Source of the DNA: Chlorokybus atmophyticus
Lineage: Eukaryota; Plantae; Mesostigma and Chlorokybus algae
Length of the DNA: 64,000 nt
Reading direction: 5' to 3'
Assembly (NCBI GenBank): GCA_009103225.1
Contig: RHPI01001259.1
Location: 1-64,000 of the forward strand
Within the stretch, counting starts at the first letter, position 1; every line of letters starts with the position of its first letter. Positions 6,151-64,000 of this stretch are shown piece after piece. A model generated the notes under the pieces. The model did no database searches, was not told the origin of the DNA, and saw nothing but the letters and a program-made list of their open reading frames with translations. A program made the position numbers and the translations under genes.

Positions 6151-6449
6151 TAAACTGAGCAAACGCACAGTTCCTTCACGCTGAAGCTGAACTGACTCCT
6201 CCACTTGTTGAGGAGAGCCTCAAGTTGTTCTCGCATCTGGCCGGTAGCCAGTGGTCCAATGGCATGGAACCAAGAGGTAGCGTTGGCAACTATCGGGATG
6301 TCCTCCACCGTGACTGCTGCCTGCTCCTCCATATGAGCGATTTCGAGGGCGGTGTGTGCCGCTTTGGTCTCTTGCACGCGATCGGCCCACCCCCCCGTCA
6401 GGTGTTCGAGCTCCCAGAACGACATATAGCGGTCTCGGAGAGCAACGCA

Positions 6450-7420
6450 TATTTTCAATAACCATACCATGCTGTTCTGATCCATGGCGCGTCCCAACAG
6501 CTGAAATTGCTGATTGTCGGTCAGCGTAGAACTTGTAATACTGCCTGGAGAGAATCTCATGGCGCGTCCGCGCTCACGTGCATTGGGTTCCTCTAGTTGG
6601 CCTGTGTTAAAATCCAACACCATGCCTTTGCCGTGGTTGCGGAAGGCGTATGATCCTGGGTAAGACACCAGAGTGGGGAGCGCACGATGTGGTTGACCAG
6701 GCTGGTTGCACTGGTAGAAGTTGTGATCGTGTCGGGTGACTGGTTGTGCTTTGCGCCCAGAGTCCAGGATAGCGTCGACGGTCAGATCGCGTGGACGACT
6801 GCTGTGTAGATATTCAGCACCAAAAAGATTTTCAACTGTTGCCAGGTTGGTCCACTTGGCGCGGACGCGATGAGCACGGCAGCCATGCCGGGCTGCGTTG
6901 ATTCTGAGAGGATGTCCAAGCAGGAAACACACCTGTCGGAAGCTGTTGGCCACGTGATGGCGCTTATCGTCCTCGGAGTGCACATTCTCGATGATATATC
7001 CTGGAGGCCTGGACAGCGGGCTGCTCTGCAGGATTTTGATGACACGCATCAGTTCCCAGAGCAGTCGTGAGCGAGGATCAGCGAGTCCTTGGCCGCTGCC
7101 TGCTCTGCAGTGTCCTTGACACTCCCATCCTGCTATCAGCAGGTCGATGTTGCCCACCGCTAGGAGGTGATTCGCAGTGATTAAACGGATGTTCTGTAGC
7201 AGTGCCTTCAGACTGCCTTGCAGTGCCGATAGCGGCAGTCGCTGCGGGTAGCATTTGTGCAGGTGGCGCAGATGGTGGCTCAGTGCAATCTGTGCGTGTG
7301 GATCAGGGGCACAATAGAAGTACTAGGTGACCGTGCGCCGGTGTTGAGGACATCGGCGAGGCCACTATCTATTCCTCCAAATAGTTCCAACACGGTGATG
7401 CCTTGTTGTCGACGGAATAC
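6450..7420 (-). pseudogene. C5 cytosine DNA methyltransferase domain within the Gypsy pol, between protease and RT
   Basis: Motif I VLELFGGIDSG (~7365-7400); motif IV IDLLIAGWECQG; motif VI YIIENV; motif VIII HGCRAHRVRAKWTN; motifs IX-X EPNARERGRAMRF…QQFQLLGRAMD. Frameshift just after motif I. Confidence 0.88.
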
Positions 7421-17800: not shown

Positions 17801-19959
17801 TGGTGCAATTGGGAGGCCTCCCTCTGCCTCGCCACTGCGGCAGCATTGGCAGTGCAGATGTCACAATTGCTGCTGTTGTGGATGGGACTGCTTGCACAGC
17901 CGGCTGTACAAGCCTTGTCACGTCAGGGGCACTCGTCGCTGGCAAACCCATCCGCACTGTGATTGTGACATTCTTCTTGGAGCGCGGCCGCTTGATCGTG
18001 GCAGCCTGTTTGTGCTCGACAGCATCACTTGCAATCGGCTGACCACCAGCAATTGGCTGATGATCTACAGCTTGCGCAGGGACCGCTGATAATGGCGGCT
18101 TTGTGACAGCGGGCTCAGACATGGGCACAGGGGGCTGTGCTTCACACTCGTGCTTCTTCGCCATGCAGCCACTAGGGCGACAACCATCCCTTTTGGTCTT
18201 GACCTTGTGGGTTGTGGCCTGCGGTGTGGACGCGCGCTCGGCAGCATCGGCTACCACACAATCCTTGTGGCCATTCGCAACGGCAAGCCCACTTGGGCCA
18301 GGCACGGTGGGGTCTGGTTCCTGGCTGGTAGAGTCGCCGATTGTCACCTGAATCAATGGTGGCTTCTGCTTGCGTGCAGCCTTGCTTCCAGCAGAGCACC
18401 AGCCATACTGAATCAGATTGCGGACCAGCGCCTCATGCGGGCTGCCAGCTGGTGCGGGAAGGGCAGGATCTTGGCTGGGAACAATGGCGAGGCTGGGCGA
18501 AACAGAAGCGAGCTTGGTTGTAGGGTTCTGTGCCTTGGCCACACCTTTGCGCACCTGCATTAGTACAAACAAGACGCGGCTTACGCACGCGCGGTGCGGT
18601 GGTGGTGGTGGTGGGGGGGGGGNNNNNNNNNNNNNNNNNNNNNNNNNNNNNNNNNNNNNNNNNNNNNNNNNNNNNNNNNNNNNNNNNNNNNNNNNNNNNN
18701 NNNNNNNNNNNNNNNNNNNNNNNNNNNNNNNNNNNNNNNNNNNNNNNNNNNNNNNNNNNNNNNNNNNNNNNNNNNNNNNNNNNNNNNNNNNNNNNNNNNN
18801 NNNNNNNNNNNNNNNNNNNNNNNNNNNNNNNNNNNNNNNNNNNNNNNNNNNNNNNNNNNNNNNNNNNNNNNNNNNNCGGGGGCATGTGTGTATGTGCGTG
18901 CGCGTGTCTTCGTACCTTGCTCAACCAACCGATCCACCACATCGGAGGCACGAAAGGCAGCCACGTGTCATCAGCAGCGTCCCAGGTCAACGCCATCCTG
19001 AGCTGCGAAACAGGCAAGACCTGCTCATCATCTTCGTCGGGAAACGACACCGTCACTTTGTTGTCCACGCGAGCACCTGATTGGCTTATCCAAGTCACTC
19101 ACAAGCGAACGACCACAAGGCAGGGCGTGCATGTATGCTTGGTCTCCACACATGCACACCCTGCGTACCTGAGATGATGCCATGCCACCACGCATCGCTA
19201 ACCCTTGCTTCGACAAATGTGCCGACGGCCCAGTCGCTGTTGGGCGGAAGCCGTCTGGGAGGAACGGGCCGTATTCTGAGAAAACTGCCAAAAACCTTGC
19301 CCGGCGTGGCGGGGCTTCGCGCCGTTGCGGCACGGCCGTCAACGGGGCTGGTCACGCGCACCCACTCTGTCAATGGGCACTTCAACTCGTCGTCCGCATG
19401 CAGCTCAGTAAAGCGAACAGCTCGACTGCCAGGTTTCCAGTCGTACACAACCCCTTCGAACCAGGCACCGCGTAGCCCTTGCTCTGTCTGCAACACCTGT
19501 GTACGTACAGCAACGGACCTAAACAAACAACATGCCAACTGTGCGAGACATTTGGGCTGATAATGTGGCATGCAGCTTATGGCTCTGATCACCACCCCTA
19601 CCCCTTGCTCTACCAACAGGTGTTTCAAGCGTTAGCACAGCAAAGCTACCAACAGGTGCTTCCAGCGTTAGCACACAGCAAAGCGCATAACACATTGTGC
19701 AACCGTGTGGGATTTTCAGCAAGCTTGACAACATGGCATGCAGTTTAAGTCTTACTGCGTCATCCCTTAAAACCTTGTCAACTGTATACATCAGTATTTC
19801 ACACTGCACTGTGCTATCTCAAAGTGTTGATACGTCATCCCTATATACCATGCTGACTGCATAAAGAACTTCCCACTGAATCATGCTAACTCAACCTGCA
19901 ATAGCAGAGACTCAAGACAGACTGACCTCAACCGGCGTGTTGGGCAGCAGCTTTGCCAT
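14879..19959 (-). CDS. IDM1/ROS4-like protein: tandem Agenet, disordered linker, Tify-like domain, double PHD, GNAT acetyltransferase
   Basis: ATG 19959 MAKLLPNTPVE|VLQTEQGLRGAWFEGVV and AVGTFVEARVSDAWWHGII (Agenet). EEGIECGHCNRIVTLSAFEFHAG (Tify-like). DDQCRLCGEGGDLICCDSCPATFHLQCMGLE|EVPSGNWYCPSCQCRICG…LICDQCERE (PHD). DFSGFFNVIL…VCVATLR|VFGRHLAEMPLIATKFNYRRQGLARRLL…LVLPA (GNAT). An N-gap lies within an intron. Confidence 0.88.
18623..18876. other. Assembly gap (N-run)
   Basis: Run of N preceded by a G-rich tract. Confidence 1.
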
Positions 19960-25941: not shown

Positions 25942-28286
25942 TTGCACAGTATAACCGAGTTGCATGTGCGCAGATGTAGCACATATGACGAAGTTGTTGC
26001 TATTAGCGACATTGATGAGGATGATTGCATACAAGATGAGTGGGATCCTGCAATGCCAGCATTGGCAATAGACCCTTTGTCCCCACCAGAGGCATACATT
26101 GACGTCATTCCACAAGTGAAACGCACTGTTGAAGTCATACCTGCTGAACAACAATGCAGCGACATTCGCTCCGTATATGCGGAGCTGTCACAGGTGACAA
26201 ATGGTTTGGAAGAATGTCCCACCTCAGCAATGCAATGGGCAGAGCAACTACGCGCAGACACTTTGGATGCGGACAACTTTGTGGCAGCTTCTTTGCAGCA
26301 GCGGATAACCGCTTGGGCCACCTGGTTGCAACTGACTATGCAAGGCAAGAAGAGCTTTGTGCTGGATTGGTTGCGTGACGGGTATCGCTTACAATGGGTA
26401 GGCACTCAAGCATCTGATACACGCAAGTGGGACGAAGTGCAAGCACTGTTGAAGGCCGAAGGCTTTGGAGATAATGATATTACAGCCATGCTGTCACGCA
26501 ATTCACCAACACCAGTTGTGTTTCGAAATCGCAAGTCCGCTTCCATACATGGCAGTTATGTTGTCAGTGAATTGGCCAATTTGGTGAAAACAGGAGCAAT
26601 TTCTGTTGTTGATGCCAGTGATGTGGCAGTAGTCACTGGCATAGGTGTGGTGGAACAAGAAAAGCGTTTGAGGCTCTGAGATACATCAACCTCTTTTTGC
26701 GCCACATTCCCTTCAGCTATGAGCGGTTGCGCGATGTGTTGTTATACACCAAGCGTCATTTCTGGCAAGTTACCGCAGATCTCAAGTCAGGCTATCATCA
26801 TGTGCCCATTCACAAAGACAGTAAGCCTTACTTGGCTCTGCGCTTTGCTGGGGTCACCTACAGGTGGAATGTACTGCCGTTTGGCCTGACTTAAGCCTGC
26901 TGGCTGTTTACAACCTTGATGTCGACTGTGTTCACGCCTTTGCGGGCAATGGGTTTTCCTTGCCTTGCTTATATTGACGACATGCACTTCAGCCATTCCA
27001 ATCGTTGGCATTTGTGTTGGCGCCGCGCGCCGCGTGGCCGCGTGCTGCGTCTTTTGAAGTTGCTTGGGATATTTGTCTCTGTGAAGAAAAGCCAATTGCG
27101 GCCAGAGCAAGTTGTGCAGTTGTTGGGTCCGCTGGTGGACACGGTCACTGGCTCGTTTGTCATACCCGCCAACAAGCTGGCTAAGATATTGCAGTTAATG
27201 AAGGACATCACGCACGCGCCTGTACTGACCAAGCGTTACTTCGCACGCATTGCTGGCAAACTCATTGCGTTGAAGCTCGCATTTGCACCTGCAAGCATTT
27301 ATGCTTGCCACCTGATGGGTCTGGCATTGGCAACAGATGCATGGGATGACAGCATCGGTGATTTGAGCGCCTTCAGACACTTTTGTGATTGGACTGCTGC
27401 GGGCTTGCAGACCTACAATGGCAATGCTTGGTGGAAGCCCCCTGTGCAGCTTGAGCTACATGTGGATGCATCCGGTACAATTGGTTGGGGGGCGACAGGA
27501 CCTTGGCCTCGCATGGCAGGCAACTTCAAGCCTGAGCATATGACACTGCCTTCAGCGGTTAAGGAGGCACTAGCCTATGTGCAAGCATTTACCGAGGTTG
27601 CGCGCGCGTTTCATCTCCAGCACTGTACAGTGCGCATTATTGGCGATTGTCAACCAGCTATACAGATGTTGAACAAGCTGTCTGCATCAGACCCTCAAGT
27701 GCTGCAGGCCTTACATCAATTGTGGTCCTTGTGCTGGGAGCGTGACATAGCGCTGACATGTGTGTGGCGCTCTCGCGATGCACTGCGCAATGCGGACGCA
27801 TTGTCCAAGTTTGTGGATAGAGGGGACTGGTGTCTAACAGCAGATGCAACTGCGCATGTGCAGCAACATGTTGGACAACCGGCGTTGGATTGTTTTGCAG
27901 CCGATTGGAACAGCAAAACACCCGCTTATTTCAGCTACATACACATGCCTGGAAGTTTGGGAAATGCTCTAACTACAAACTGGCGTGACGTTCTTCAGCG
28001 CTTGGGTGGCGGCTTTGTTTGGTGTCACCCGCCATTGGCTCTCCTGAATGAAGCCATAGCATTATTGCAGTACTATCAGCTACCAGCTATGGTGTTGGTG
28101 CCTGAATGGCACTCTGCTGTGTGGTGGCCAGTATTTCACAATTGGCAATTCAGTTATTTTGAGAGGTTGGGCTCAAAACCTGAGTGGTTTCAAAGGGGTG
28201 CGCGAGTACCCGCAAACAGCATCAACCCTGGACGCTACCCATACATTTGTGCTTTTGTGCATTGGGTAAGCATACCTCTCATGTAA
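25942..28286 (+). pseudogene. YR-element pol: RT, RNase H and Dam-like N6-adenine methyltransferase domain
   Basis: TADLKSGYHHV, NVLPFGL and LAYIDD (RT); LHVDASG…EALA…IIGDCQ…NADALSK (RNase H); LDCFAADWN…VWCHPP…VLVPEW (MT). Two lesions: a frameshift near 26677 and TAA at ~26892. Confidence 0.92.
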
Positions 28287-29432
28287 ATAACGATGCATGA
28301 TAACAGGACCTCTCCATGTGCCTTGAGCTTGTATTTCTTCCAGGGTGACACCGGCATGAAAGGCACTCTGTGCAGCACCACGCCGAAAGGAATGCAACCC
28401 CAGGTGCGGCCTATAAATGCCACATGCCTTGCAGCAACGCACGAAGGCATGATAAGCACAATTGCCTGACATGCAGTGTTCTTCCCATTTCGACCTATTC
28501 TTTGCAACAGGTCGGAATAAAGGACCAGCAGTGATGGCAAATGAGCTGTTGCGACAATATGTCAGATAGGCGTAGAGCACTTCAGAGAACTCCACAGGGA
28601 GACCACTGCTGCGCACTTGTATAGTAGGTGCACCTCCCGTGCTGTAATTTTTCAGATGTGGTAAAGTGGCCGCTAGCCCTGAGCTTGAATCAGCCGCTTG
28701 TATCTTGTGCATTTGTAAACGCGCACCTTCACCACCCCGTTGCCATGTGCACCACAGGTATATGCATAATGTGTAGTCGCGCCAGAGCACAGCCTTGTCA
28801 TGTGTGATAGTAGATGGCTGAGGTATGGTAGACAGCTGTTGCTGGAAGTGGTAGATCAGCGTGCGCATATCATCCATCGGCAGTGGTACAGTAGCAATAG
28901 GTTGCACGCCTTGCCGAGCAGCAATCTTCGCATACCCTTGGCGAAACTCGCGCACGTCTATGGACAGAAGCGGGTTGCCCACAGACCTGTCGCTGTCCCA
29001 AGGGCTGATGCGTCCCAGCAATCTGAAGGAGCATGTGAGATGGGAAATGACATTGTCCAGTGTCGTGCTAGCGATCATGCGATGGCCATGGCGGTCAAGC
29101 CTGCGAGCTTTGCCAATGTGTGTGTCGGTCCAGTGCCCAGCAAGGTAGCTTGTGACAACTGCTGGGGTGACGTTGGCAACAGCAATACTCAGCTCAGGAT
29201 GTTGCAGATAGTTGACAAACTCTTGCCACACGCGATCACGTTGATTGCGAGTCTCATCGCAGACAGCTTCACGGCTGATGCGCTCCACGTCTATCAGCGC
29301 TGCCGCAGCTCGCTCACGCAGATTACAACTGGTTATTGGTTGAGGACGAATTGCTGCGCGTGCGGTGCGTTGCACATCAGCGGTTTGCTGCAACCGCTGT
29401 GCAAAATCCATCTGCGGACACAGAGAAACCAT
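28173..29432 (-). CDS. Tyrosine recombinase, antisense to pol, uninterrupted
   Basis: First ATG at 29411. Catalytic set present: WQRGGE (R), LKN (K), HSFRRG (HxxR), GTW (W), HRY (Y). Its 3' end overlaps the pol 3' end by 114 bp. Confidence 0.93.
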   Translation of the reverse strand: MVSLCPQMDFAQRLQQTADVQRTARAAIRPQPITSCNLRERAAAALIDVERISREAVCDETRNQRDRVWQEFVNYLQHPELSIAVANVTPAVVTSYLAGHWTDTHIGKARRLDRHGHRMIASTTLDNVISHLTCSFRLLGRISPWDSDRSVGNPLLSIDVREFRQGYAKIAARQGVQPIATVPLPMDDMRTLIYHFQQQLSTIPQPSTITHDKAVLWRDYTLCIYLWCTWQRGGEGARLQMHKIQAADSSSGLAATLPHLKNYSTGGAPTIQVRSSGLPVEFSEVLYAYLTYCRNSSFAITAGPLFRPVAKNRSKWEEHCMSGNCAYHAFVRCCKACGIYRPHLGLHSFRRGAAQSAFHAGVTLEEIQAQGTWRGPVIMHRYLHERYAYPMHKSTNVWVASRVDAVCGYSRTPLKPLRF

Positions 29433-49275: not shown

Positions 49276-49682
<407 letters not shown>

Positions 49683-51299
49683 NAGTTCACACTTGCTATT
49701 GCTGAAGAGCAATGGGTAGGACGTGGTTTGGAATTGGTGGGAAAGGTCGTTGATGCCAACATATCGACCTCCCCTGCGGAGCCTCCACCCAAGTGGACCC
49801 GGAAGCAAGCAACATTTGTTTACCAGCAGATCAGCTATTGTACTCGTGGTGTGGATACCAAAGCATCATTGCTCAAGGACATGCCTGATGGCAATGAAAG
49901 TCAGGCGTTAATGTCCATGGTGATGTACAATGCGGTGAGCTTCGAATGTACAAACAGTTTTGATGTTGCTGATGTTTGCTTTCAATTCTTAATGCGACCC
50001 CGCAGAGTGCTGACTGCAGTGTGTAGGTATTCCAACGCCCTATGTTCAAGCAGGCGGCACGCGCAACGGATGTGAGGCGGACGTGGCGCTGGCAGGAGCT
50101 GCTTGACTGTGTATAGCTTAGCAAGGCAGTTTGCTGTGCTGCTGGGCAAGTGTTGCTGGGCATGGACACGTTGTACGTTCGGCATGTGCTCAGTTAATGC
50201 AGTAGTGTTTGATGGGATTACTGTCCGTCAGTCAGCTGCTCATGCGCTACAATGAAGCTTACTCGTTTTCCACCACCACTGCCGTAGCTGCTGCTGGTGA
50301 TGGCGGTGGCGGTGGCGGGAGAAGGGACGTCAGCGTGGAGGAGGCGCTGCGCTGACGTCGGGGGATAGCAGGAGAAGCCGCAGCAGATGGAGCTGGGTGA
50401 AAGTGCATTCGCCGGTGAGCAAGTGTGCGCTGCTATTCTTACGGGCGTGAGCACGTTAGCAGCACTGCTTCGCGTGGAGAGGATGACTGCGTGGGCGACT
50501 GGCAGTCATGGTCGCTAGTCAACGTTCTCATAGGGTGCGCATGTGTCTGGTTGGATATGTCATGCATTGCACAGGCAGGCACAAGCAGCACCTCGTCGAT
50601 GAAGTAAGCAATTGCATGCATGCTTTGCTTGCGGACTAGCTAGCGTCTGCTGGCTGGGCAGCGTACATTGTTTGTTGTGTGTACGGGGTGCTCTGACATA
50701 CATGAGCAGAGTGGACATGCGCACGCTGTTGTACATGATCAGCATGCACGCACGCAGCCATCAGCACATACACAGCATTCTATTACACCGCCAGGCTATG
50801 TGCCTATGCTAACTCCACTACCCCTAACATGCACAGCCCCCACAACAACCCGCAGTTGTTGTAGTACCTGCAACACCGCCGGTGTGTACATAAATCCAAG
50901 ACAGAATTGTGTGTGTTTGTGCACAGCATGCCAATGAATGTCTTGTTGCTGTTGTTCACACCGCATGAAATAGCGCAAAGCGTCAGCAGCACTGCAATGG
51001 AAGCAGGCATTCCCGTGTCGATTCTGCCTATCACAATGGCTGTGCCAACTTTCCTCACAGCATATTGCTAACAAGCATGCATACCAACCTCGTGAGTCAA
51101 GTGCAAGGCTATCAGAGTTTCACTAGCCAACAGTCATGTACAAATGAGAAGGCTAACAGACAACAGTAACCAAACGCAAACGTCAGCTTGATAGAAAGTT
51201 GGGTTGGGTTGACGGGGCAGGTGCAGCCAGCCTGGGACCTCAGTAGCAAATCCCATGGAGAACTGAACCAGCTCAACAAGCCTGGGCAGGACAGGTGCT

Positions 51300-53187
51300 T
51301 CAGCGGTCTTCTGCGGCGTGCACAGCAGCCTGCCTTGCCAGGTTTGCGACCGTGTTGATGCCGTGGGCCTCCACTTCTATCGTCGTGCGCCCAAAGTAAA
51401 AAGATGTCTCAATCTTACGCTGAATGCCCAGTGCAGTCAGGGCACGGTGTGTCACACTCCCCAAGCAGTAAAAGTGTAAGAGCGCTGTCTGTTGTATATA
51501 CTTGGGCAGATCGCCTGGATTGCTCTCGGTGCTGAAAACTGTTTCTCTCATGGCACGCTGCTGCTTGTCTATTGCCACCAATGCTCACAACAGGGTAGTC
51601 CCGCTCAGTTAGCTGCCCCTTTCGCACAAGGACTGTGTAGTTGTGGCTGCACTTCCAACCAGCGTCTGACTGGGATCTGTACTCTGCAAGATCACCCGGC
51701 TCGAACTTGCGTACACAACCTGCCACGTATGTCCGGCGTGCAAATCGACAGCAAGCAATTTTAGAGGTGTTGAGGGCATACGCCCTGAACCACGGCAACT
51801 CCCGAAAGCAGCGGGTTGCGAACCCGCCTTTAGGAGGCCACCTGTTCCTGCGTGGGTGCAGGTCAGTGTCAGCGCGCATGTGGGTACCAGTTAGCTGAAG
51901 GTTAACATAGGTCACTCGCCAGACACAGTGTGCTACAAGCATTACACTCACTTGCAGGTATATCGATTCGGCAAAGCCTCCCACCAGCAGAATGTGCGGG
52001 TTTGCATTGCACAACGCCTCGCTTGCCAACATGCTGTCCAGGCACGTGAGCGCGCTGCGCATCACTTTGCTGAAACACTCCTCCAGCTCGGCAGTCGATA
52101 GCTTCAAAGCGCGTGTGCTGCGCTTGAGTTTTTGCCAGCTGGGTTCGTCAGACCCAGCTCCAAGGGACTGTTTCAGCAGCTCACACCAATCAAGAGCCAC
52201 AGAAGCGGGCATATCACCTGAGCGTGGAGTTTCGGTGCGATCAAATGAGTGGTTTGTTATCAACCAGTGGCGCATGAGCAAAGCATACTCCTCTGGATCA
52301 GACAATGCAAGGTCCTGCGCGCAAAGGCAAGTCTTTTGTCGAGTGGTTTTGCTGAGGTGCATGTTTTTCCCACAAGCACCTTACCTTTATGCGTGAGACC
52401 TTCTTTGCGGCAAAGCGCATGAAAGCATCATCAACATCAGTACCGCCACAGCGTTCCCCTTTGCCAATGGCCAGCTCCTTGATGCGACCGTCAGGCATGA
52501 CCCTCGTGTGCGACCGCGTCTATCGTGCCCCCTCCTACATCAAGCACAATATACTGATCCCCTCTCTTCAATTTCAGATCCCCGACACCCTTGGCTTGGC
52601 CGTACAGGGAAGCTGCTGTGGGTTCAAGGCATATCAGCAGTTTGAAAGGGCTGCCCTGGTCATCCGTGTCAGGTCCATCCTTCCCCCTTGTGAGTCCCGC
52701 CAACTAACAAACGGTTTAGTCAGCTAACAGTGACCGACTCAACATCTGCGTCACAAACATCTGCACAACACATTATTGTACATCTGGCTTGTACATAAGG
52801 TGAGCTTACTTGGGCTGCAGCCTGCATTGTTGCTTTTGCTTCATCAGTCCAGATGGCGGGCACTGTCAAGCACCACTGCACGTGACACTTGCGGATGGTA
52901 GGGTGCTGCCTGTTGAAGTCATTCATGGCGAAGTTCTCAATCGAGTGAATGAAGTTGGCAGTGGTGATGCGCTTGGTTGTGAGGGCTGCAGGCAGAGTGG
53001 TTGGGCGCAACGCCGGTTCAACCAGCCATAGCTTGAAGCGCTCTACAACCAGGTACCCGCTATCAGCATGGACAAAGCCATCTTCGTCATCAATGTCGTC
53101 GCAGCTGCCGTCGTCACCAACTTCTGCAGATGTTGCACGTCTTGACAAATCTTTACTCTTGAGGCATCCTTCAGCCTGTGGCACCAA
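51300..53187 (-). pseudogene. HSPA12-type Hsp70/actin-fold protein, copy 1, N-terminus missing
   Basis: VERFKLWL, VQWCLTVPAIWTDEAK, LEPTAAS, VLDVGGGTID, GERCGGTDVD, ILLVGGFAES, RFARRTY, FYFGRTTIEVEA. Several frameshifts; no IDFGT exon. Confidence 0.88.
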
Positions 53188-53329
53188 ACCCCTTGCAGAG
53201 TCCTATTGCGTGCAACAATGCATCTGCTGGCCCGGTTTCTGTCCATGTCACTGTCGCTCTGTCTAAGGCTGCTGGCAGCCGCTGTGGTTGCATTTCAATG
53301 CACCTGAAGTGTACCGCTCAAGTGTGCTG

Positions 53330-54245
53330 TGGCAGGCCTGCTTGGTGCGGTCCTATGCCAGATTCTTCGAGCGTGAACTGGTTGACGATGAGGGACCTTC
53401 CTTCCTCGAGCACCATGCGGAGATTTCAAAAGTATTACTCCGCCACAAGCTCCTCAGGCAGTTCGTGGCCTGAAGTCCAGTCCGCACTGGACAAGTGGCG
53501 TTATTACTCGCAAATCCACCTCTGCCAAACGCTAGTGCAGGTTCTGCTCATGCCGACTCAATCCGCACAGTGCATTGGTAGCAACGTGGATGGGAGTGAC
53601 ACATATGCACACATAAGTACACCTTGTGCCGCCGATGCATTGTTCAACTGTGCAATTGCTGTTGTCCAGCGCATGTCATTGTCCTTGTCAACTGCGTGTA
53701 CTGTGTACTCGCAACTTCACGTGTCTATGTCCCACAGATGAACCGACCAGCACATGCAAGGTGTCTGCTTGTGAAGCATCATTCTGACTTGGTTGTTTAC
53801 AGGAGCTGACAGCGCAGCGCAAGGCGAGCGTCAGCAAGCCATTGACATCCTGGCAAAGCTGTGGGACTTCTTCAGCCATGAAGGCGAAGCTGTGCTTGGA
53901 GTATGGGAGGACACTTTGTGGAAGCTGCACTTGCTGTCACACGCGTTTCTGGTACCTCCGTCCATCATCAGGCGCACTTGCGGTCAGGTCGTCAACGCCG
54001 GCGACATTCTGTGCCAGATCATCAGCGAGCCTGTGGCCAGCAAGGCCAATGATACTCGCGGTCGGGCCGCACTCCGCTCTGATTCGAATGTGGCCCTGAT
54101 GGTGTTCTTCGGCATGTCGCTTGGCTCGCATCACGTGCTGCCGTGTCAAGTTGTACTCATGCCTGCTGCGGAGGTCTCTCCTCCAACACGGAAGCAATGC
54201 GCAGGGCGCAAAGCATCCCCCACACTTGCGAACCAAGCGGTGTAG
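53330..54245 (+). pseudogene. Partner gene B, copy 1 (GIL1/IRKI-like C-terminal domain), 5' part missing
   Basis: ACLVRSYARFF…WPEVQSALDKW, then LWKLHLLSHAFLVPPSIIRRTCGQ…VALMVFFGMSLGSHHVLPCQVVL. Frameshifted after EHHAE relative to copy 2. Confidence 0.6.
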
Positions 54246-55354
54246 GCGGCACATTTGCAAGGTGGTGCGCTGCAGCCACAGCATGGTTGTTCATACCCAA
54301 TACAAAGGCGCTGTTAGAGGAATGACAGTCACTTCTAGCTGTGCAAAGGCTTGGGGAAGTTGAGTGAGTGTGATTGCACCATGCATAAGTGGTAAGGCAT
54401 AACTAGGTCTCTTGGGGCGTGAGCGCTAGCACTGCGTTTCAGCCAGCGTTTGCTAGGTATGTTGGCAATATGAGTTAAGGTAGCATGTGTCGAGGTAGTG
54501 AAGCCGGAAGTGAACTGACATGGTAGTCCCGCATGTACAGGCAAAGACAGTGGCACGAGGATTGTCAGGTTGACCATCGGGTGCATTCACTACCTCACAC
54601 GCTGCACTATCCCTACCACCCCGTTAGCCATGTGTGTGTGCGCGCATTCGCCGTACGTGTCTAGATTTTTAGATGCTTGTGGCTGATCATTGGGGCTGCG
54701 CCAATTTTGCATTTGCTGTTGCTGTTGAAAGTGGAAGAAGATGACACAGCATTGGTTGTAAAAGTCGTCATCGAGGACATGTCGAGCAAAGCGCATCATC
54801 CACCTGAGCGGTTCAAACAGTAAATGTGGGTCTACGGCACCAAAACTTGCTTGTAATGACCTGAGTCATGCAGAAGCAACATCTGCATGTATTGCAGGGA
54901 AGGGCCAGATCTGTCATATCAACATAGATTAAATACTGGCGCTGCAACATGAGAAGTTGAATTGTTACATCAGCATGTCTTGATGTGATAGGTTTTCCCA
55001 GATATGGTGACGTGTGAGGTATGTGTGCTGATGTTTGCCAAAAGTGATAGCACGCGCGTGTCAGATATTAGCACCTGTCTTGAACAGCGGTGTCCAATTG
55101 CCAAGCACACTTGATGATGGTCTGTGGAAGTAGCATGAATGCGTGCAAGGCATTAGCAAAGCAATGGCTGCCATGCTGCACGCCTTTCTGAACCATCATG
55201 ATGATCAATACCACATCGCGGAGATTGAAGCACGCAGAGCCTCACAGGTGAGACATGCACGTGTAACCATTGTTGCACAAGCACCACAATACATGCTCTC
55301 AGATTAAACAATGATCTGCGCGATGACCTCGTGCCCAACCGCCTATTAGGCTTC

Positions 55355-55700
55355 TGGCTTTACATGATTGTTGGCTAATGCTGTGTGATAGCCTCACACC
55401 CTAACTGACGAGGTTTGTATGGACGCTTGTTAGGAGTGTACTGTGTGGACCATGGGCAGAGGCATTGTGACACGCAGGCTTGATTCAGAGAGATAGCCTT
55501 CTTGCATTGCAGTGCTGCTGACGGTTCATATTGTTCAAGGCAGTCTGCACGATCACAATGAGACAATCGATTGGAACGTTGTGCACAGTCAACAGCATAC
55601 TTGCTAACCATGCACTCTGGCTAGTCCGCATGAGAGCAAGTCAGGTGCGGCTTGAGGCTCACCTGCAACGACCCAATACCCAGAGAGGATGTGACCATAT
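55355..55700 (+). repeat. Further copy of the sequence found downstream of the Hsp70-like genes
   Basis: Aligns by eye to 63605-63960 (same strand) and in part to 51070-51140 (opposite strand). Confidence 0.8.
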
Positions 55701-56542
55701 GACCAATCAGCTTTCATACCACAAAGCCAAGCACTATGCTTTGTAATAGTGGTTGCGGCTAAGAGCTCGGAGGATACTGCGTTGGGTACAAACAAGCGGA
55801 AAACGAGCTGATACCTAAGCTCATAACAAACAGCACAGCGTCTACCTAGCTGACGCACCTTGCAATTGAAGTGGTGTGCGATGATGAATGACTGACATTG
55901 AGCGAGTCCAGCATGTACACAACCAGGCTCCGACCAGCCTCCCCACCGCCGCCTCCTCCTCCTCGTCCTCGTCCTCCGCCTCTGGCATTTAGGGTTTGGT
56001 GCAGGCGGTTTGGGCGGGAACGTGTGTCCGTTTGGAAGGAAAAAACGACGACCAAAGCTTCAAAGTGATTGAATAGATGCGACTCCTTCTCCACTTGCTC
56101 CTTGTGGTGGGGGGCCGGGGCGGCGGGGGTGGGTGGGGGCGCCTGGCGCTGAGTTGAGCTGGGCTGGGCTCGGCTGGGATGAGATGATGGTGAGGGGCTG
56201 TCATGAGTAGTAGGTGGCGTCTGAGGGATGTCGTTGTGGGCTTGGTGGGCGTGCGCAGCTTGCGGCGATTGTTGAGCGGAGCGGCAGACCAGCAGGCAGG
56301 CGGCAACCAGCGCAAGAATTGGACAGGCCAAGCCACGTGCAAGGCAAGCGCCTGCTTGATTGTGTGTTTGTGTGTTCTGCTGTCTCCCTGCGGCATCTGA
56401 AACAGCGACTGTGCACTTCACTGTATGCATGCATGCATCGCACTTGACAGTTGTGGACGTTTTGCTCGGTTGGCTTCAACTAGCTAGCTAGCCATCTAGC
56501 TCGTGTGTAATCGCTGCTAACGAACACGCCATCTGCAGGTTA

Positions 56543-56989
56543 GTGCTGGGCGCCATGGCCGCTCAGGACTTGCCCAACCTCCCCAACATCGTTGGGGGTT
56601 TGCAACGTATACAGGATGAAGTGTCGAAGGTTGCCAACCCGCCAGGGTTCCAGCAGCAGGGCCACCTCTTTCACATGTTCCAGCAACTGCAGAAAGGGCA
56701 AGCCGACATCATAGCAGGACAACAAGGCCTCGCAATGGCGTTGCGATACGCGGACTTCAACAACCAGAGTAGGCTGTTCAACAGCAAGTGTCGACCGGAT
56801 GCGGCACTCCAATGGCTCCGCAACACCAACCAAGGTAATCCCCCCGTCAACCCTCCCGCTACCAAGATGGACGTACACAGCGCGACTGGTGCAGTTATTG
56901 ACAAACTGTTGCAGTTTTATGGCTTGCCGGTTGTCGGGTTGGTTGTAGAGCGTCGCTTTCGCCTGCTGGTTTTCATTGGTGCGGATTAG
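56543..56989 (+). CDS. Intronless small protein: short coil plus Mug135-like C-terminal domain
   Basis: NNQSRLFNS…LQWLRN…NPP.NPPAT…IDKLLQFYGL..VG…RRFRLLVFIG resembles my recollection of the fungal Mug135_C pattern. Clean open frame; likely ATG at 56555. Confidence 0.55.
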   Translation: MLGAMAAQDLPNLPNIVGGLQRIQDEVSKVANPPGFQQQGHLFHMFQQLQKGQADIIAGQQGLAMALRYADFNNQSRLFNSKCRPDAALQWLRNTNQGNPPVNPPATKMDVHSATGAVIDKLLQFYGLPVVGLVVERRFRLLVFIGAD

Positions 56990-57080
56990 TTTTGTTGCAT
57001 TCAAGGTTTCCGCCAGTTGGTTTTGTAGTTTGCCTATTGTTGTACAGGTGACAAAGTTGCGCCTGCAGTTCCCTATTTCG

Positions 57081-57311
57081 TCACTCAGCCCCCCCTATCT
57101 TTCGTGTTGTCCACCTCGCATGAGGGTTTGTTTTGCGCAACGCCTCATTTGCTACCATGCTATCGAGGCAACTGAAAGTGCTGCGCATCACCTCGCTGAA
57201 GCATACCTCCATATCAGTAGTGATAGGCTTCAAGGCGCACGTTTTGCGCTTGAGTTCCTGCGAGCTGCTTTTGTGGGTTAAATTTGAAAAAACTTTCTCA
57301 TGTGCGCGCAT
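57081..57311 (-). pseudogene. Third Hsp70-like fragment
   Basis: QELKRKTCALKPITTDMEVCFSEVMRSTFSCLDSMVANEALRKTNPH is paralogous to copies 1 and 2. Confidence 0.85.
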
Positions 57312-57526
57312 ACGTGTGCGCGTTCAACTGTTTCTGTGCGTGGGGGTGTGCACATGCGCGTGCGCATGCGTGTGTGCATGCGTGTGCGTCATTGTGCTTT
57401 TCTGTCTCTGGCATCTGGTGGCTTCATTACACTTTGTGGCTTTCATTACATAGCTGCATGCTGCACGTTTCACAACCACATTCACAACTCTGCAAAATTC
57501 AGCCACGATTCACTGTTTTTCTGCTG

Positions 57527-57700
57527 CAGGCGTGTCTCATGGACGCGCATGTCACATACTTTTGGGGCGAGCTTTTCAATGCAAAAGGGGCCTCTTCTTT
57601 AAGCAACGCCGAGTGCGCCACTAGGTTTTCCGGCTTCACCATTGCGCGGCTCTCGGCTTGAATGGAAACCTAGCACCTCCGCTCGTCGAACACTATGCCG
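57527..57700 (+). pseudogene. Third, more diverged gene B exon fragment
   Basis: ACLMDAHVTYFWGELFNAKGASSLSNAECATRF aligns with ACLVRSYARFFEHELFDIEGASFLEHHAERAGRF. Confidence 0.6.
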
Positions 57701-58383
57701 GCTGGGTATACTATTGTAGAACGGAGCTCTGCAACCTGCTAGTGAAAGCATGACACTTACATTTTCTATGTGAGAGTCTCCCATACCAATGGTTGGTGCC
57801 GTTATCTCGCCATCACTCGTCAATGTAAAGTGCAAGGTACACAGTTACCACATTGCATGTACTGTTTGCGCACACATTACTTAGCCAGCAACTACCCCAC
57901 ACACTGGCCGAATAAAGTTCCAGTTGCTATGAACCATCGCATAAGTTACTTGAAGATCGACTTGCTGCTCCTTTGAACATTCCAGCTGCTTACATACCCC
58001 AAGGGGAAGTCCTCATTGTGGCACAAATGTGTGAGCCCGCAGTACCTGCGTGTTGTTACATGCTGCTATCGGCGTACCACGACATGTTGAGGGGCAGCAC
58101 ATCACTGTTGGTTAAGTGCATGCAGGCAGTCAAGCATGCTTGCTAGCCTGCTTGCCTGCTAGCCTGCTACTGCTACTGACTTACTGTGGCTGCTAGTTGC
58201 CTAACCACTAACCTGCTACTGCCTACAGCTGCTTACCTACTGGCTAAAAAGTGTGTGCATGAGTGTAGTTGTCTCGCTGAGCTGTTGACAGTGAGTTGTT
58301 CAAGTCATTTCATGCTTTTGCCTAGCAGATTGGCACACAGCGCATGCATCCACTCATGTGCCAGAACTGCCAATGCAACAATA

Positions 58384-60290
58384 TTACAGGCTTAACGCTG
58401 CCATCCCTCCAACAAGGTCTTTGTCTTGGGTTTGCGCAAGTTTGTTGTCTTCAAGTTGTGGCTGCAGCGCACCATCTTGCGGATGTACCGCCTGCACTGC
58501 TTGGTTTGCGAGTGCCGGGGATGCTGTGGGCCATGCGCATTGCGTCTGTGCCGGACGAAAGACCTCCGCAGCAGGCATGAGTACAACTTGACACGGCAGC
58601 GTGTGATGCTTGCCGAGCGACATGCCAAAGAACACCATCAAGGCCACATTAGATGCATGAGAGCGGCGAGTGGTAATGGCCTTCTTGGCCACGGGCTCGT
58701 TGATGATCTGGCACAAATTGTCGCTGGCGTCAACAACCTGACCGTAAGTGCGTCTGATGATGGGCGGAGGTACCAGAAACGCGTGACACAGCAGGTGAAG
58801 CTTCCACAAAGTGTCCTCCCATACTCCGAGCACAGCTTTGCCTTGGTAATTTATGTAGGCCCACAGCTTTGCATGGATGTCATTTGCTTGATGATACTCA
58901 CCAGCTTTCATCTCCTGTGAAAAACCAAGACAGAATGAGCGTGACAAGCAGACCACCCCGTATGTGCTGCTTAGTGTTGACAATATACACGCAAAGCTGC
59001 AAGTACACACTACTTGACACTGACATGTGCTGAACAACAGCATCATTCCACGGTTGCAACTGGAACAAACACGCTGCATCACTGGCAGATGGTGCATATG
59101 CTCTTGTACTAGTCCCAGTGTAGTCTTCCCATCAGCATTACCAAAAGGCACTGTGCGGGTTGCGTTGTCGCATGAACAATACCTGCACTAGCATTTCGCA
59201 GAGGTGGATTCGGGAGTGATAACGCCACTTGTCCAGCGCGAACTGGACTTCGGGCCATGCGGTGCCAGAGGAACTTTTGGTGGAGTAGTACTTCTGGAAC
59301 CTGCCAGCGCGCTCAGCATGGTGTTCGAGGAACGAAGCTCCCTCAATGTCAAACAGTTCATGCTCGAAGAATCTGGCATAGGACCGCACCAAGCAGGCCT
59401 GCCAAAGCAATCACACAAGCACTTACAGCAGTGCAGATCAAATGCAGTGAAGTGCAACCATGCACACATTGGCAGCCGGCAGCTGCTTGCTTACAAGCGG
59501 CCAAACCACAACATGGCATGCAGCTGACTGTTCAACTTACATAGGTCACGTAAGTTACATGCGTACAATGTGGACCTCACAGCGCAGACAGTACAAGACG
59601 CAACCATCAGCACGGGTAGGGGACATCCGCATGCAACGTGAACGCCTCACCTGCACCCACTGCTTGGCAACCCAGTCTTTGTCTCCAGACAACGCGAGTA
59701 CACTCCTGGGCAAGAGCTGATCTGCATTATCGATGACCCAGTCTGCAATCTCCTGTCAGCAATGTTGTTCAGCGAGCAGGATTGGCGATGTAATGAAGCA
59801 CGCATTGCTGTGCATCTTAACCTGCGCAGCTCTGCCCGCATCAGCTTGTGCAAGCAAGAACTGCCGGTCAAGAGCTGGTGGCACCGCTAGTGACGCAGTG
59901 GCACTGCTGCCTGTGACACTGCATAAGCGCAAAAAGGTCAACTGCAATGTGACATGGGCGGAATGCGCTGCCATGCAAGCACTCATACCTACCTGTAAGC
60001 AAGCTGCAACTGGTTCTGGAGAGCTGCATTAGCCGTCTCTGCTGCATGGCGCAGCGGCTGCTGTTGTTGCAACTGCGTATTGAGTAACTGGTTGTGAGCT
60101 TCCAGCTGGTATGCGCTCGCCTGTGCCTGCGTGCGCAATTGCTGCTCCTCGTGCTTGCTGGTTTCGCTGGAAACCAGTAGCTCTGTCAGATCCAGCAGCT
60201 CAGATCGGAGTCTCTTGCAATCCTCAGCATGGTTAGCTGGGTTGCCAAAAAGCATTCGGCTAAGCCCGCGGAATCGCCCCATGGCTACTG
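58384..60290 (-). CDS. Partner gene B, copy 2: N-terminal coiled coil, helical middle region, GIL1/IRKI-like C-terminal domain
   Basis: Coil exon DCKRLRSELLDLTELL…ETANAALQNQLQLAY (59990-60290). Middle exon 59160-59400 is open. C-terminal exon LWKLHLLCHAFLVPPPIIRRTYGQ…VALMVFFGMSLGKHHTLPCQVVL. Internal exons between 59500 and 59990 not fully resolved. Confidence 0.6.
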
Positions 60291-61089
60291 AGACCAGATA
60301 AGTCATGCTGCACTCAGTGGCGCGGTAGAATGAACAGCAACGCCCTCTGTGCGCCAAGTAAAGCAATCAGCGTTGGACAGGCATACCTACAAGAAGGTGT
60401 GTGCTGCTTGGCTTGACAGACTGTGCTGCTCGCTCTCTCTTGCCCCTTGAAGCTGGGCATCATGCGTGCACAGGTTGTGCCTGTCCCATCAACAAGGCGA
60501 ACGTGCGTAAAAGGTACGCAACTTCGGCATGTGCGGTCTGTCACTTCACTGAGGCAGCTGGCAAGGAAGCTAGCACGCTCCAGGTCACGTTGTGCGCGCT
60601 GTCACATCACCAACTCCTACAACTCCTGCGTACAACTTGCGCACAGCTTAGAGTGGAAGCGTGCATGTTGGTGACCAATGGGAGTTGCGCTGCGGCTCTT
60701 CAGCCAGTTGACGTCGGCGTCGTTAGGGCCTACAGCGACAGGGACACCGGCAGAGGGCGTAAGTTATACGCAGCGATCACCGTACAAACAGCGTGATCAA
60801 GCAGGACGAGCGCTCAGTTGACAGTTTTGCAGTCGAAGCCGTTCTCAAGGTAAGCAACTTGCAACGCACACGTAAGGTTCCGTCAATGTTGCAGGCCAGT
60901 AGCTACCAGTGTTGTCAATGCAGAACAGATGACACTGATACCGCATGTTCAGGCATCGGAGACTGGCTCACGCAATGGCTCCTCACCTGTGTCTAGAGGA
61001 GGTGGGCAAAAGAGCAACGCAACTGAGTTCTGTATTCTGCTCTGTATGCACCCATGCATGCATTGCTGACTGCCAACAGTCGCCTACGC

Positions 61090-63461
61090 AGGCCAAGCCG
61101 CGTGCTGTTGTGGCAATTGACTTCGGAACGACGTACTCAGGTATGTAGCACGCACGCGCCCACACACACAACTGTATATGTGCACACGCCCCAGAGCCAC
61201 AGCTCAGTTGCAATGGTTTTAGTGTCGCAGCAACCAATGTATACAGCGTTTGGTAACGGGCTTCTCCTGGAGCAGAAAGGATGGTGAAGTGCACACCTGT
61301 TACCAATGGCCGCAACAGCTGATGAGCTACTGCAAGACACCAACTGTATTGGCATATGCAAAGGCAGGCAAAGTAGTTTTATTTTGTTGCTGGCTGTGCT
61401 GAACCCTCTATGCCAACACATTGTTGCTGCAGGACACGCATGGCCGTTGGCAGGCCAAGAAGTGGGGCTGGCCTGCTTCACTGGCCAACCGCACCGCGCA
61501 AGCAGACAGCGACCGACTCACTGCACTGGTGGCAACCATGCAAGGTTTGCAATTGCTGTCAGACTTAATAGCTGCTCATGTTGCATGGAGGGGTCTAAGC
61601 GTACGCTGTCTTGCCACAGGCTGAAAGGTGCCTTACTATAAAAGACTCGGCAAGACGCGCAACATCTGCAGGAGGCGATGATGACTGCAACTACGATGAC
61701 ATTGACGACGAAGATGGCTTTGTCCATGTTGATGACGGTTACCTGGTCGTAGAGCGCTTCAAGCTATGGTTGATGGAACCTGCGTTGCGCCCAACCACTC
61801 TGCCAGCGGTGCTCACCACCAAGCGCGTCATTGCGGACTTTCTCCGCTTGATTGGGAGATTTGCCATGGACGACCTTAACCAGAAGCACCCTACCATCCG
61901 CAAGGCTCACGTTCAGTGGTGCTTGACAGTCCCCGCCATCTGGACTGATGAAGCGAAGGAAACCATGCAGGCTGCAGCCCAAGTAAGCTCATCTCCTGTA
62001 CAACTGTTTGGCACAGACATTTGTGATTGGGGGTGTAGAATTCGTCGCCACCCAGCTGACCAAAACCGTTTGTTAGTTGGCGGGACTTACAAGGGCGAAG
62101 CACGGAGGTGGCACGGATGACGAGGCCAGCCCGTTCGAACTGCTGATATGCCTTGAACCCGAGGCAGCTTCCTTGTACTGCCAATGGTGTCGGGGATCTG
62201 AAGTTGAGGAAAGGGGACCAGTATGTTGTGCTTGATGTGGGAGGGGGCACAATAGATGCGGTTGCACACAAAGTGAAGCGGGACGGCCGCATCAAGGAAT
62301 TGGCCATGGGCATAGGGGAACGCTGTGGCGGTACTGATGTTGATGATGCTTTCATGCGCTTTGCCGCAGAACAGATTCCACCCATAAAGGTAATGTGCTT
62401 ATCACATCTTGTATCTCAGCTAGAGCATTCAGCAAACAACTTGCCTTGCGTACAGGGCCTTGCATTGTCTGATCCAGAGGAGTACGCTTTGCTTATGCGC
62501 AATTGGTTGATAACAAAACATGCGTTTGACGGCATTGAAGCCCCGCGCTCAGTCGATTTGCCTGCTTCAGTGGCTCTTGACTGGTTTGAGCTACTGAAAA
62601 AGTCGGCTGATGAAAGCAGCTTGCAGAAACTCAAACGCAGCACGCGCGCCTTGAAGCTATCAACTGATGACATGGAGGAATGCTTCAGCGAGGTGATGTG
62701 CAGCGTGTTCAGTTGCCTGGACAGCATGTTGGCAAGCGAGGCATTGCGCAACACAAACCCCCACATTCTGCTAGTGGGAGGGTTCGCCGAGTCGTTGTAC
62801 CTGCGAGTGAGTGTTGTTTTCCATGCTTGTGCCTGCCTGCCTGGCGCAATCCATACTGACCTTTGGCTATGTATCTACATGCACGCACTGACACTCACCT
62901 GTGCCCGCGCAGGAACAGATGGCCTTTGACAAGCGTGTTCACGTCCCGCTGCTTCCAGGTGTTGCCGTGGTTCATGGGGCAAGCTTGTATGCGCTCAACA
63001 CCTCCAAGATTGCTTGTCGATTTGCACGCCGGACATATGTGGCAAGCTGCGCCCGCGGCGTCAGGCTAGGTGATCCTGAAGAGTACAAATTCCACACCGA
63101 CTCAGGTTGGTTGTGCCGCCATGCATACACAGTCCTTGTGGAAAAGGGACAGCTCATTGAGCAGGACAAACCTGTTGTGAGCACTGGAAGCCCAGTAAGC
63201 AAGCAGCAGCGTGCCATCACAAAAAAGGTTTTTAGCACCGAGAGCGATCCGGACGATCTGCCCAAGTATACAACAGACAGTGCGTTTACACTGCTTGGAG
63301 AGTTTGTCATCCCGTGCCCTGACACTGCACTAGGCATTGATCGCGACATTGAAACTTCTTACTACTTTGGGCGCACGACAATAGAAGTGGAGGCCCGCCG
63401 CATCAACACAGTTGCGGATCTGGCAAGACAGGTCGCTGTGCAAACCTCAGCAGAACTCTGA
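61090..63461 (+). pseudogene. HSPA12-type Hsp70/actin-fold protein, copy 2, nearly full length
   Basis: RAVVAIDFGTTYSG (phosphate-1), TVPAIWTDEAK, LEPEAAS, VLDVGGGTIDAV, LLVGGFAES, PGVAVVHGA, YYFGRTTIEVEA. A 5-bp deletion relative to copy 1 near 62180 shifts the frame. Confidence 0.88.
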
Positions 63462-64000
63462 CGCCACCTGCCATGCCCAAGCTTGTTGAGCTGGTCCAGT
63501 TCTCCATGCGATTGGTGGTGAAGCCATAGGCTGCACCTGCGCCGTCAGCCCAACTTACTTGTAAGCTGACTCCCCGTTAGTTACTGTTGTCTGTTAGGCT
63601 TCTAACTTTACATGATTGTTTGCTAATAAACTCTGATAGCCTTACACCTGACGAGGTTGGTATGGATGATTGCTAGCATGATGCTGTGAGGAAACGGGCA
63701 GAGGCATTGTGACAAGCAGGCTTGGCACAGAAAGCCTTCTTGCATTGCATTGCTGCTGACGGTTCATGCTGTTCTATGCAATCTGCACGATCACAACGAG
63801 ACATTCGACTGGAACGTTGTGCACAGTCAACAGTGTACTTGCTCACCTGCATGCACTCATGCTAGTCCGCATACGAGCAAGGCATTCAGTTGACCAGGTC
63901 CTGCTTGAGCCTACCTGCAATGCATGACATACCCAGAGAGGGTGTTATGACTATGACTGGGCAATCCCACACAGTCATATTCTCTTTGCAAAAGCAGTGC

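Follow-up and report, generated by a model that had tools for sequence, protein, structure and literature searches.

A probably decaying cluster of duplicated HSPA12-type Hsp70 and coiled-coil genes in the alga Chlorokybus atmophyticus

The window, by which we mean the whole 64,000-nucleotide stretch of DNA analysed here, comes from Chlorokybus atmophyticus (JGI Chlat1) and carries two genes lying head to head, an Hsp70-like ATPase gene and a gene for a coiled-coil protein, here called gene B. Two copies of the pair are found in opposite orientations (Table 1). In self-BLASTN the Hsp70 block (50918-53183 vs 63825-61612) is 77.7% identical over 2294 nt and the gene B block (53285-54328 vs 59460-58398) 74.8% over 1104 nt, both at E 0.0, and 50918-54328 and 58398-63825 are a single inverted duplication covering both genes at 75-78% identity. 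An earlier note on this DNA had described a head-to-head pair duplicated as a unit, and these blocks bear it out. The third, remnant pair that it placed in the polarity of copy 1 is likewise present. Among the degraded fragments between the two pair copies, an Hsp70 fragment (57121-57271 vs 62763-62613) is 83.6% identical by BLASTN and 72.5% identical in amino acids by TBLASTN (E 1e-16), and two gene B fragments of the same polarity as copy 1 are 40-44% identical by TBLASTN (E 3e-5 and 2e-4).

Table 1. Features of the duplicated locus, in coordinates of the window
Feature	Position	Strand	Description
Hsp70 copy 1	50918-53183	-	HSPA12-type pseudogene, coding remains about 51300-53187, plus 3' flank
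Gene B copy 1	53285-54328	+	Truncated and frameshifted; homology block to copy 2
Isolated extra Hsp70 3' flank	55343-55692	+	78% identical to 63591-63945, 71% to 50918-51159
Third Hsp70 copy remnant	57120-57272	-	Portion of the large middle exon
Third gene B copy remnant	57521-57747	+	Middle exon; fragments 57521-57658 and 57703-57747
Gene B copy 2	58092-60859	-	Intact, expressed and spliced
Segment found in copy 2 only	59460-61612		5' exons of both genes and the intergenic region
Hsp70 copy 2	61080-63461	+	HSPA12-type pseudogene
Antisense spliced RNA over Hsp70 copy 2	60986-64000	-	RNA contigs with canonical GT-AG introns

The two arms differ by a loss that the earlier note had overlooked: the 2.15 kb with the 5' exons of Hsp70 and gene B and the sequence between them are missing from copy 1, where the gap between the self-BLASTN blocks leaves about 100 bp instead. 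The possibility that the pair derives from a mobile element or a virus was considered and rejected, as no terminal repeats, viral relatives or adjoining element genes were found.

HSPA12-type Hsp70 genes are known chiefly from animals, with a large expansion in bivalves. Judged by its sequence the window Hsp70 is of this class, as had been proposed. Its best database matches are animal HSPA12A-like proteins (E 6e-8, 51 bits), and colinear TBLASTN matches to HSPA12 reach a summed E of 2e-27; HSPA12 is thus closer than canonical DnaK/Hsc70, with DnaK/HscA matches of only 13-17 bits and a weak match to PF00012 (E 0.005). The last exon matches the HSPA12-specific C-terminal region (P0004 residues 273-427) at E 5e-16, and the C-terminal region of an oyster HSPA12A-like protein is 30% identical to the window Hsp70 over 158 aa (E 5e-16). 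For the same exon there was no Pfam match and no solved-structure match at E<=10, the latter arguing that the canonical substrate-binding domain is absent; HSPA12A and HSPA12B similarly have a C-terminal region of their own in place of that domain and its lid. Further likeness to these two proteins lies in the Hsp70/actin-like ATPase motifs (DFGTT, DVGGGT, LVGGFAES) and in TVPAIW and LEPEAAS. All of the Hsp70 motifs quoted earlier (LTVPAIWTDEAK, LEPEAAS and FGRTTIEVEA) were found, as was the gene B tail (WKLHLL..AF..P..IIRR..GQVV...VALMVFFG...PCQVVL). The family also resembles bivalve HSPA12 genes in its local duplication and pseudogenisation. However, the window Hsp70 is only about 27-30% identical to animal HSPA12, the host is a streptophyte alga, and the window copies are pseudogenes, with no intact copy seen in the window. 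Literature searches yielded no account of algal HSPA12 or of an Hsp70/coiled-coil pair like this one, metagenome and viral contig scans detected no relatives of the Hsp70 exon or of gene B, and NCBIfam and PADLOC gave no additional family match.

To judge from their reading frames, the Hsp70 copies in the window are pseudogenes: their frames are shifted both against one another and against the outgroup P0004, and neither copy keeps an intact frame. Copy 2 retains AIDFGTTYSG at 61107-61142, LDVGGGTID and LLVGGFAES inside the 62153-62929 ORF, LTVPAIW, LEPEAAS and the FGRTTIEVEA tail, and has candidate N-terminal exons at 61141-61611. A 5-bp deletion near 62178, inside the ATPase domain, puts LEPEAAS and DVGGGT out of frame with each other; TBLASTN accordingly places P0004 residues 47-62 (62137-62184) and 65-267 (62159-62815) in differing frames, and an RNA contig (62091-62368) confirms the sequence over the deletion with 0 differences. 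In copy 1 a +1 insertion near 52505 yields DAVAHEGHA-stop, an 8-bp deletion lies near 51790, and the last exon has additional indels of 2 bp and 6 bp; this copy is without the N-terminal exons bearing the DFGTT motif, and its HSPs to P0004 are split between frames. The split frame of copy 2 and the frame-breaking indels in both genes of copy 1 had escaped the earlier note. A plus-strand intron skipping the 5-bp frameshift was also considered and rejected, the sole GT..AG candidate being 29 nt long and out of phase, against 69-446 nt for the introns observed at the locus. Since copy 2 has a single unambiguous lesion and keeps all of its ATPase motifs, its death may be recent, or it is possibly intact in other strains.

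The dN/dS among paralogues, a comparison suggested in the earlier note, came to 0.41 for Hsp70 and 0.36 for gene B, rough values as the aligned blocks contain some intron read-through. These figures fit constraint over part of the history with relaxation later, and since both families give values below 1, the pair probably functioned in the ancestor.

The two gene B copies, both of which are annotated, have fared differently. Copy 1 corresponds to model Chlat1 4746 (P0001, 184 aa), which maps at 100% identity and uses 53388-53501 and 53805-54245. Set against copy 2, 11 bp are deleted near 53419 and 8 bp inserted near 53812, no coiled-coil exon is left, and the 184-aa model is probably a pseudogene product. 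Copy 2 has an RNA-supported coding sequence running from an ATG at 60282 to a stop ending at 58384, an intact frame of 411 aa, and an alternative isoform of 398 aa starts at an ATG at 60463. Its annotated model, Chlat1 4747 (P0002, 459 aa), includes first and last exons that are without RNA support.

Transcription of the locus was read from RNA contigs of one informative run, whose RNA status was guessed by the tool and is supported by canonical splicing. All 11 verified contig joints between 57850 and 63600 are canonical minus-strand introns, and plus-strand joints number 0. Those of gene B copy 2 (58913>59182, 59751>59821, 59918>59993 and 60166/60287>60387) are minus-strand GT-AG, and gene B is the only long ORF of the spliced minus-strand RNA. 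Spliced RNA also runs antisense over Hsp70 copy 2, beginning past the window end, with minus-strand introns at 61297-61742, 61891/62004-62090, 62801-62898, 63076-63171, 63258-63362 and probably 63537-63846, none of them plus-strand compatible. With a longest ORF of 183 codons, this RNA appears to be non-coding and would be either a long gene B leader or a separate lncRNA. A rare sense Hsp70 transcript is possible, as the contigs prove presence and not absence. Contigs further cover 60387-60859 and 60986-61294, the latter spliced on the minus strand to 61741-61890, and the supposed bidirectional promoter at 60300-61100 is thus transcribed through on the minus strand. Together with the minus-strand-only joints, this contradicts the co-regulated bidirectional expression that had been proposed from that region.

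It had also been suggested that gene B resembles GrpE. GrpE is the nucleotide-exchange factor of Hsp70; its fold joins long helices in pairs to a four-helix bundle and a beta domain at the C-terminus, and it binds the Hsp70 ATPase domain and accelerates nucleotide exchange. The likeness of gene B to it is in crude layout only, a long helical or coiled N-terminus and, after it, a C-terminal portion containing some beta strands. In contrast to GrpE, gene B has no sequence or profile similarity to PF01025, its C-terminal part is predicted, at low confidence, to be mainly helical with one hairpin, and the partner Hsp70 is not intact. Neither P0001, P0002 nor the C-terminal exon gave a Pfam match at E<=10 to GrpE, to PF04859 or to PF24994 (GIL1_IRKI_C), for the last of which HMMER filters may conceal very weak matches; the scan returned only generic coiled-coil families (E 0.5-0.8). 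A PDB profile search with gene B returned only coiled-coil chains, with no solved GrpE chain among them. AlphaFold2 models of P0001 and full-length P0002, each from a two-sequence alignment, have mean pLDDT of 37.9 and 35.6, too low for a usable fold, and the predicted secondary structure is, with low confidence, nearly all helix with a single hairpin. The GrpE proposal therefore finds no support in these searches, and our best guess for gene B is a scaffold protein of coiled-coil type whose C-terminal domain is helical.

A second suggestion on gene B, that its tail is like that of GIL1/IRKI, fares a little better. The DUF641 family (GIL1, IRKI, PSI, COST1; PF04859 and PF24994) is streptophyte-restricted, as is fitting for this host, and its members have an N-terminal coiled coil and then a conserved C-terminal tail, a layout resembling gene B. 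A language-model search with gene B residues 125-425 listed a streptophyte PF24994 GIL1_IRKI_C cluster, the sole named family in the list, at rank 26 with a score of 0.85 (under the 0.9 line) and 134/256 shared features, and the same family had been named from the motif in the earlier note; the highest-ranked matches are unnamed fungal clusters, and P0001 gave no usable match. Against this, neither Pfam model of the family matches gene B, and a HMMER profile search of 1.84 billion proteins retrieved no GIL1-like protein and no relative of gene B in any other organism. We regard it as a tentative possibility, somewhat short of an even chance, that gene B is a highly diverged streptophyte DUF641/GIL1-IRKI member beside Hsp70 by the accident of one duplicated block. 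As this concerns the ancestry of gene B alone, it is compatible with a decaying cluster; gene B would possibly be a very distant relative of the family, now acting without its Hsp70 neighbour, the Hsp70 copies all being pseudogenes. We know of no reported connection between the DUF641 family and Hsp70s. One coiled-coil member of DUF641, COST1, reportedly uses its coiled coil to bind the RHD3 GTPase and stimulate it (PMC13189119), so that an NTPase regulator of the coiled-coil kind is conceivable. By this analogy, gene B might be a basal, very diverged member of the family, coupled both genomically and functionally to an HSPA12-type ATPase in an early streptophyte and regulating it much as COST1 is reported to do with RHD3, the locus being the last relic and an intact partner perhaps surviving elsewhere in the genome; we consider this very unlikely.

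Such findings bear on the idea that the pair functions today as a co-regulated module, gene B serving the Hsp70 as a GrpE-like exchange factor or as a cognate partner of some other kind, with both genes expressed from a shared promoter and the module evolving by birth and death. The repeated duplication of the two genes together, the dN/dS below 1 in both families and the precedent of COST1 favour it. However, both Hsp70 copies are frameshifted and gene B outlives its dead neighbour, a GrpE signal is absent from Pfam and solved structures, the secondary structure is predicted, at low confidence, to be almost wholly helical, and the RNA joints all lie on the minus strand and run through the "promoter". 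Gene B is also without a detectable relative in other organisms, so that any cross-taxon linkage is invisible. For the present-day locus the module is largely refuted, and we consider it very unlikely. Of the birth-and-death proposal, one part holds, in that the pair was copied more than once and the copies decay; the working module does not. Paired NLR immune receptors offer a partial parallel in their divergent orientation, duplication of the pair as a unit and many dead copies at a locus, but here nothing points to joint function or co-expression, the intergenic region is transcribed through on one strand, and only one member of one pair survives.

We consider it probable that the locus is a cluster of segmental duplications in decay, as opposed to a working chaperone and partner, since the Hsp70 copies are broken and only one gene B is intact and expressed. 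In the order of duplication, loss and frameshift that we infer, an ancestral head-to-head pair, made up of an HSPA12-type Hsp70-like ATPase gene and the lineage-restricted gene B, would have been copied as one block at least two times, one of them a large inverted duplication. Copy 1 would afterwards have lost the 5' region common to both genes and accumulated frameshifts in both, the third copy would have been reduced to fragments of 150-230 bp, and Hsp70 copy 2 would have gained its 5-bp frameshift. Gene B copy 2, with its spliced minus-strand transcript and 411-aa frame, would be the sole remaining working gene, and minus-strand spliced transcription also crosses the dead Hsp70 copy 2 and the supposed common promoter.

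A role at the level of RNA was also weighed, in which the antisense RNA, or read-through of the inverted arms, would give dsRNA or a natural antisense transcript regulating HSPA12-type paralogues elsewhere. The antisense spliced RNA is real, and the pair copies form an inverted repeat with about 4 kb between its arms. However, the arms share only 75-78% identity, a poor match for siRNA targeting, an intact target paralogue is not known, and antisense transcription through pseudogenes is commonplace and usually without function. We therefore hold such a role to be highly improbable.

If the decaying-cluster explanation is correct, a streptophyte alga once possessed HSPA12-type Hsp70 genes and is now losing them, and a lineage-restricted, multi-exon coiled-coil gene has outlasted its duplicated neighbours. 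Beyond the annotation the significance is small, though should the weak GIL1/IRKI lead be true, gene B would take the history of this little-understood family of plant proteins back to the earliest-diverging streptophyte lineage. Elsewhere in the genome there may be a paralogue of HSPA12 type that is still intact, whether or not it has gene B as a neighbour. Some loose ends of the RNA contigs are absent from the window, indicating that related sequence is transcribed from elsewhere.

A single large inverted duplication in the window, detected by self-BLASTN, covers both the Hsp70 gene and gene B, its head-to-head coiled-coil neighbour, and since homology runs through both genes the pair was copied as a unit, as proposed in the earlier note, whose coordinates and motifs were correct. 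The breakpoints fall in the Hsp70 intron before the TVPAIW exon and in the gene B intron before the middle exon. An additional 2.15 kb in copy 2 (59460-61612) supplies the 5' exons of each gene together with the intergenic region; copy 1 has only ~100 bp in this place. Across the other 50 kb of the window TBLASTN found no further copy. The locus is a duplicated cluster in decay: both Hsp70s are dead, gene B is dead in one copy and alive in the other, and various fragments accompany them. Our comparison covers the 64-kb window together with protein, viral and metagenomic searches, and within that reach the linkage is only a local series of segmental duplications, the outcome that the earlier note had itself set against a birth-and-death module. 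Just upstream of the cluster lies a perfect (CT)n microsatellite (202 copies, 404 bp, 100% matches, 49279-49682). In the spacer between the inverted arms, one 450-bp stretch (56540-57004) is open on each strand for ~150 aa; the plus-strand frame, 56543-56989, matched no family in Pfam, with DUF7722 at E 0.07 only.

Features of the duplicated cluster and of the RNA crossing Hsp70 copy 2
Feature	Coordinates	Strand or orientation	Identity	Evidence
Hsp70-side arm	50918-53183 vs 63825-61612	inverted	77.7%	self-BLASTN
Gene B-side arm	53285-54328 vs 59460-58398	inverted	74.8%	self-BLASTN
Third-pair Hsp70 fragment	57120-57272	-		BLASTN/TBLASTN
Third-pair gene B fragment	57521-57747	+		TBLASTN
Separate copy of Hsp70 3' flank	55343-55692			self-BLASTN
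Introns over Hsp70 copy 2	61297-61742; 61891 or 62004-62090; 62801-62898; 63076-63171; 63258-63362	-		RNA contigs

The Hsp70 was searched one exon at a time rather than as a joined or frame-corrected model. Best relatives of its large middle exon were animal HSPA12A-like proteins (oyster P0004, our outgroup, E 6e-8; a fish protein, E 2e-6), canonical Hsp70 models gave only 13-17 bits, and P0004 was colinear with copy 2 at a summed E of 2e-27. The last exon alone matched the HSPA12-specific C-terminal region (E 5e-16) and no solved structure, so it is without the canonical substrate-binding domain. The HSPA12 assignment is sound, and the earlier reading of the family was right.

Both Hsp70 copies are broken. 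Copy 2 has lost 5 bp near 62178, which places LEPEAAS and DVGGGT in different frames, at a site that is a single frame in copy 1 and in the outgroup; an RNA-derived contig over 62091-62368 crosses it with 0 differences, and the deletion is therefore not an assembly error. For the exons at 61141-61611 of copy 2 we found no in-frame linkage either, a point treated as uncertain. Copy 1 has a +1 insertion near 52505 leading to a stop after DAVAH, an 8-bp deletion near 51790 with more indels in the last exon, and missing N-terminal exons. No annotated protein for either copy was recovered among database proteins of 142-451 aa.

Both copies of gene B are annotated genes, and the names of their proteins identify the window as Chlorokybus atmophyticus, a streptophyte alga of an early branch. 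The C-terminal exon, used in a word search, returned one protein, P0001 (jgi/Chlat1/4746/Chrsp308S04735), encoded at 53388-53501 and 53805-54242 with 100% identity, and the HMMER profile search returned P0002 (jgi/Chlat1/4747/Chrsp308S04737), encoded on the minus strand at 60460-57905. All coiled-coil exons are absent from copy 1, which compared with copy 2 is missing 11 bp near 53419 and has gained 8 bp near 53812, lesions that its annotated 184-aa model steps around. Copy 2 is alive. In contigs from the RNA sequencing run X1 the splice joints are 58913>59182, 59751>59821, 59918>59993 and 60166 or 60287>60387, a loose end implies a further joint at 59402>59655, and every joint checked is a canonical minus-strand GT-AG intron. 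Joining the exons gave one long ORF of 411 aa (ATG 60282, stop ending 58384), or 398 aa from ATG 60463 with an alternative acceptor. The first (60460-60389) and last (57985-57905) exons of P0002 are without RNA contig support; the contigs use a donor at 60387, shifting the frame relative to P0002 so that the start is ATG 60282 or 60463, and continue uninterrupted past 58411 to the stop ending at 58384.

The idea of a co-regulated bidirectional pair is contradicted by the RNA. All joints within the plus-strand Hsp70 copy 2 are minus-strand introns, none fits plus-strand splice sites, and contigs over 60387-60859 and 60986-61294 run through the proposed bidirectional promoter. Joints and contig cover together describe a spliced minus-strand RNA lying antisense through the Hsp70 pseudogene, toward gene B. 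A loose end at 63540 resumes at 63851, consistent from the sequence with an additional minus-strand intron at 63537-63846, and the spliced RNA has no long ORF besides gene B. The antisense RNA may form one transcript with gene B or be a separate one, and a rare sense Hsp70 transcript is possible. The antisense introns coincide almost exactly with the pseudogene's sense introns (61983-62090, 62801-62912): minus-strand 62004-62090 against plus-strand ~61983-62076, and 62801-62898 against ~62807-62912. Good splice signals occur there on both strands, e.g., ACTCAC, which is GTGAGT on the minus strand.

A GrpE-like gene B, the other half of the proposed chaperone module, found no support. At E<=10 Pfam gave gene B no family, including GrpE (PF01025), DUF641 (PF04859) and GIL1_IRKI_C (PF24994, present in Pfam 38.1); NCBIfam and PADLOC gave nothing, and its profile matched only coiled-coil proteins, e.g., myosin, among PDB chains. 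Both AlphaFold2 models, of P0001 and P0002, were unusable (pLDDT 37.9 and 35.6), nearly all helix with one hairpin, and as weak evidence this predicted secondary structure would not suggest GrpE. Word searches found the two window copies only, and among 1.84 billion representative proteins the HMMER profile added one spurious repeat protein. A language-model search placed a streptophyte cluster with PF24994 at rank 26 (score 0.85, under the method's reliability line), notable only as the same family that the earlier note had named; we regard the GIL1/IRKI likeness as a lead. The DUF641 protein COST1 was recently reported to stimulate the RHD3 GTPase through its coiled coil (PMC13189119), which leaves an ancestral role as an NTPase regulator just conceivable.

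Nei-Gojobori estimates over aligned coding blocks, rough and including some intron read-through, gave dS 0.62 and dN/dS 0.41 for the Hsp70 copies and dS 0.37 and dN/dS 0.36 for gene B. The duplication is old, and these values are consistent with early constraint and later relaxation in the dead copies. Scans of viral and metagenomic contigs found no relatives. One X1 contig is 90-95% like the gene B middle exon (59233-59402 loose end), and a contig diverges at 63517 in both X1 and X2, the latter being another sample from the same study. Their non-matching parts do not occur in the window even when up to 3 mismatches are allowed (0 matches), which shows that a further related copy is transcribed elsewhere in this genome or strain. 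The cluster may extend past the window end, or more copies may exist. X2 contigs were only 90-95% alike at 61059-61157 (the DFGTT exon region) and 61385-61563, suggesting that X2 comes from a diverged strain, or from a cryptic species, in which this part is transcribed too.

Elsewhere in the window, three minus-strand ORFs had domain matches: 336 aa at 6147-7157 with a C-5 cytosine DNA methyltransferase domain fragment (PF00145, E 1e-7), 451 aa at 17217-18572 with a Tify-domain-binding domain (TDBD, PF16135, E 3e-14) at its end, and 419 aa at 28173-29432 with a weak, below-cutoff match to Phage_integrase, the tyrosine recombinase family (E 5.5e-4), which may be a Crypton/DIRS-type mobile element.
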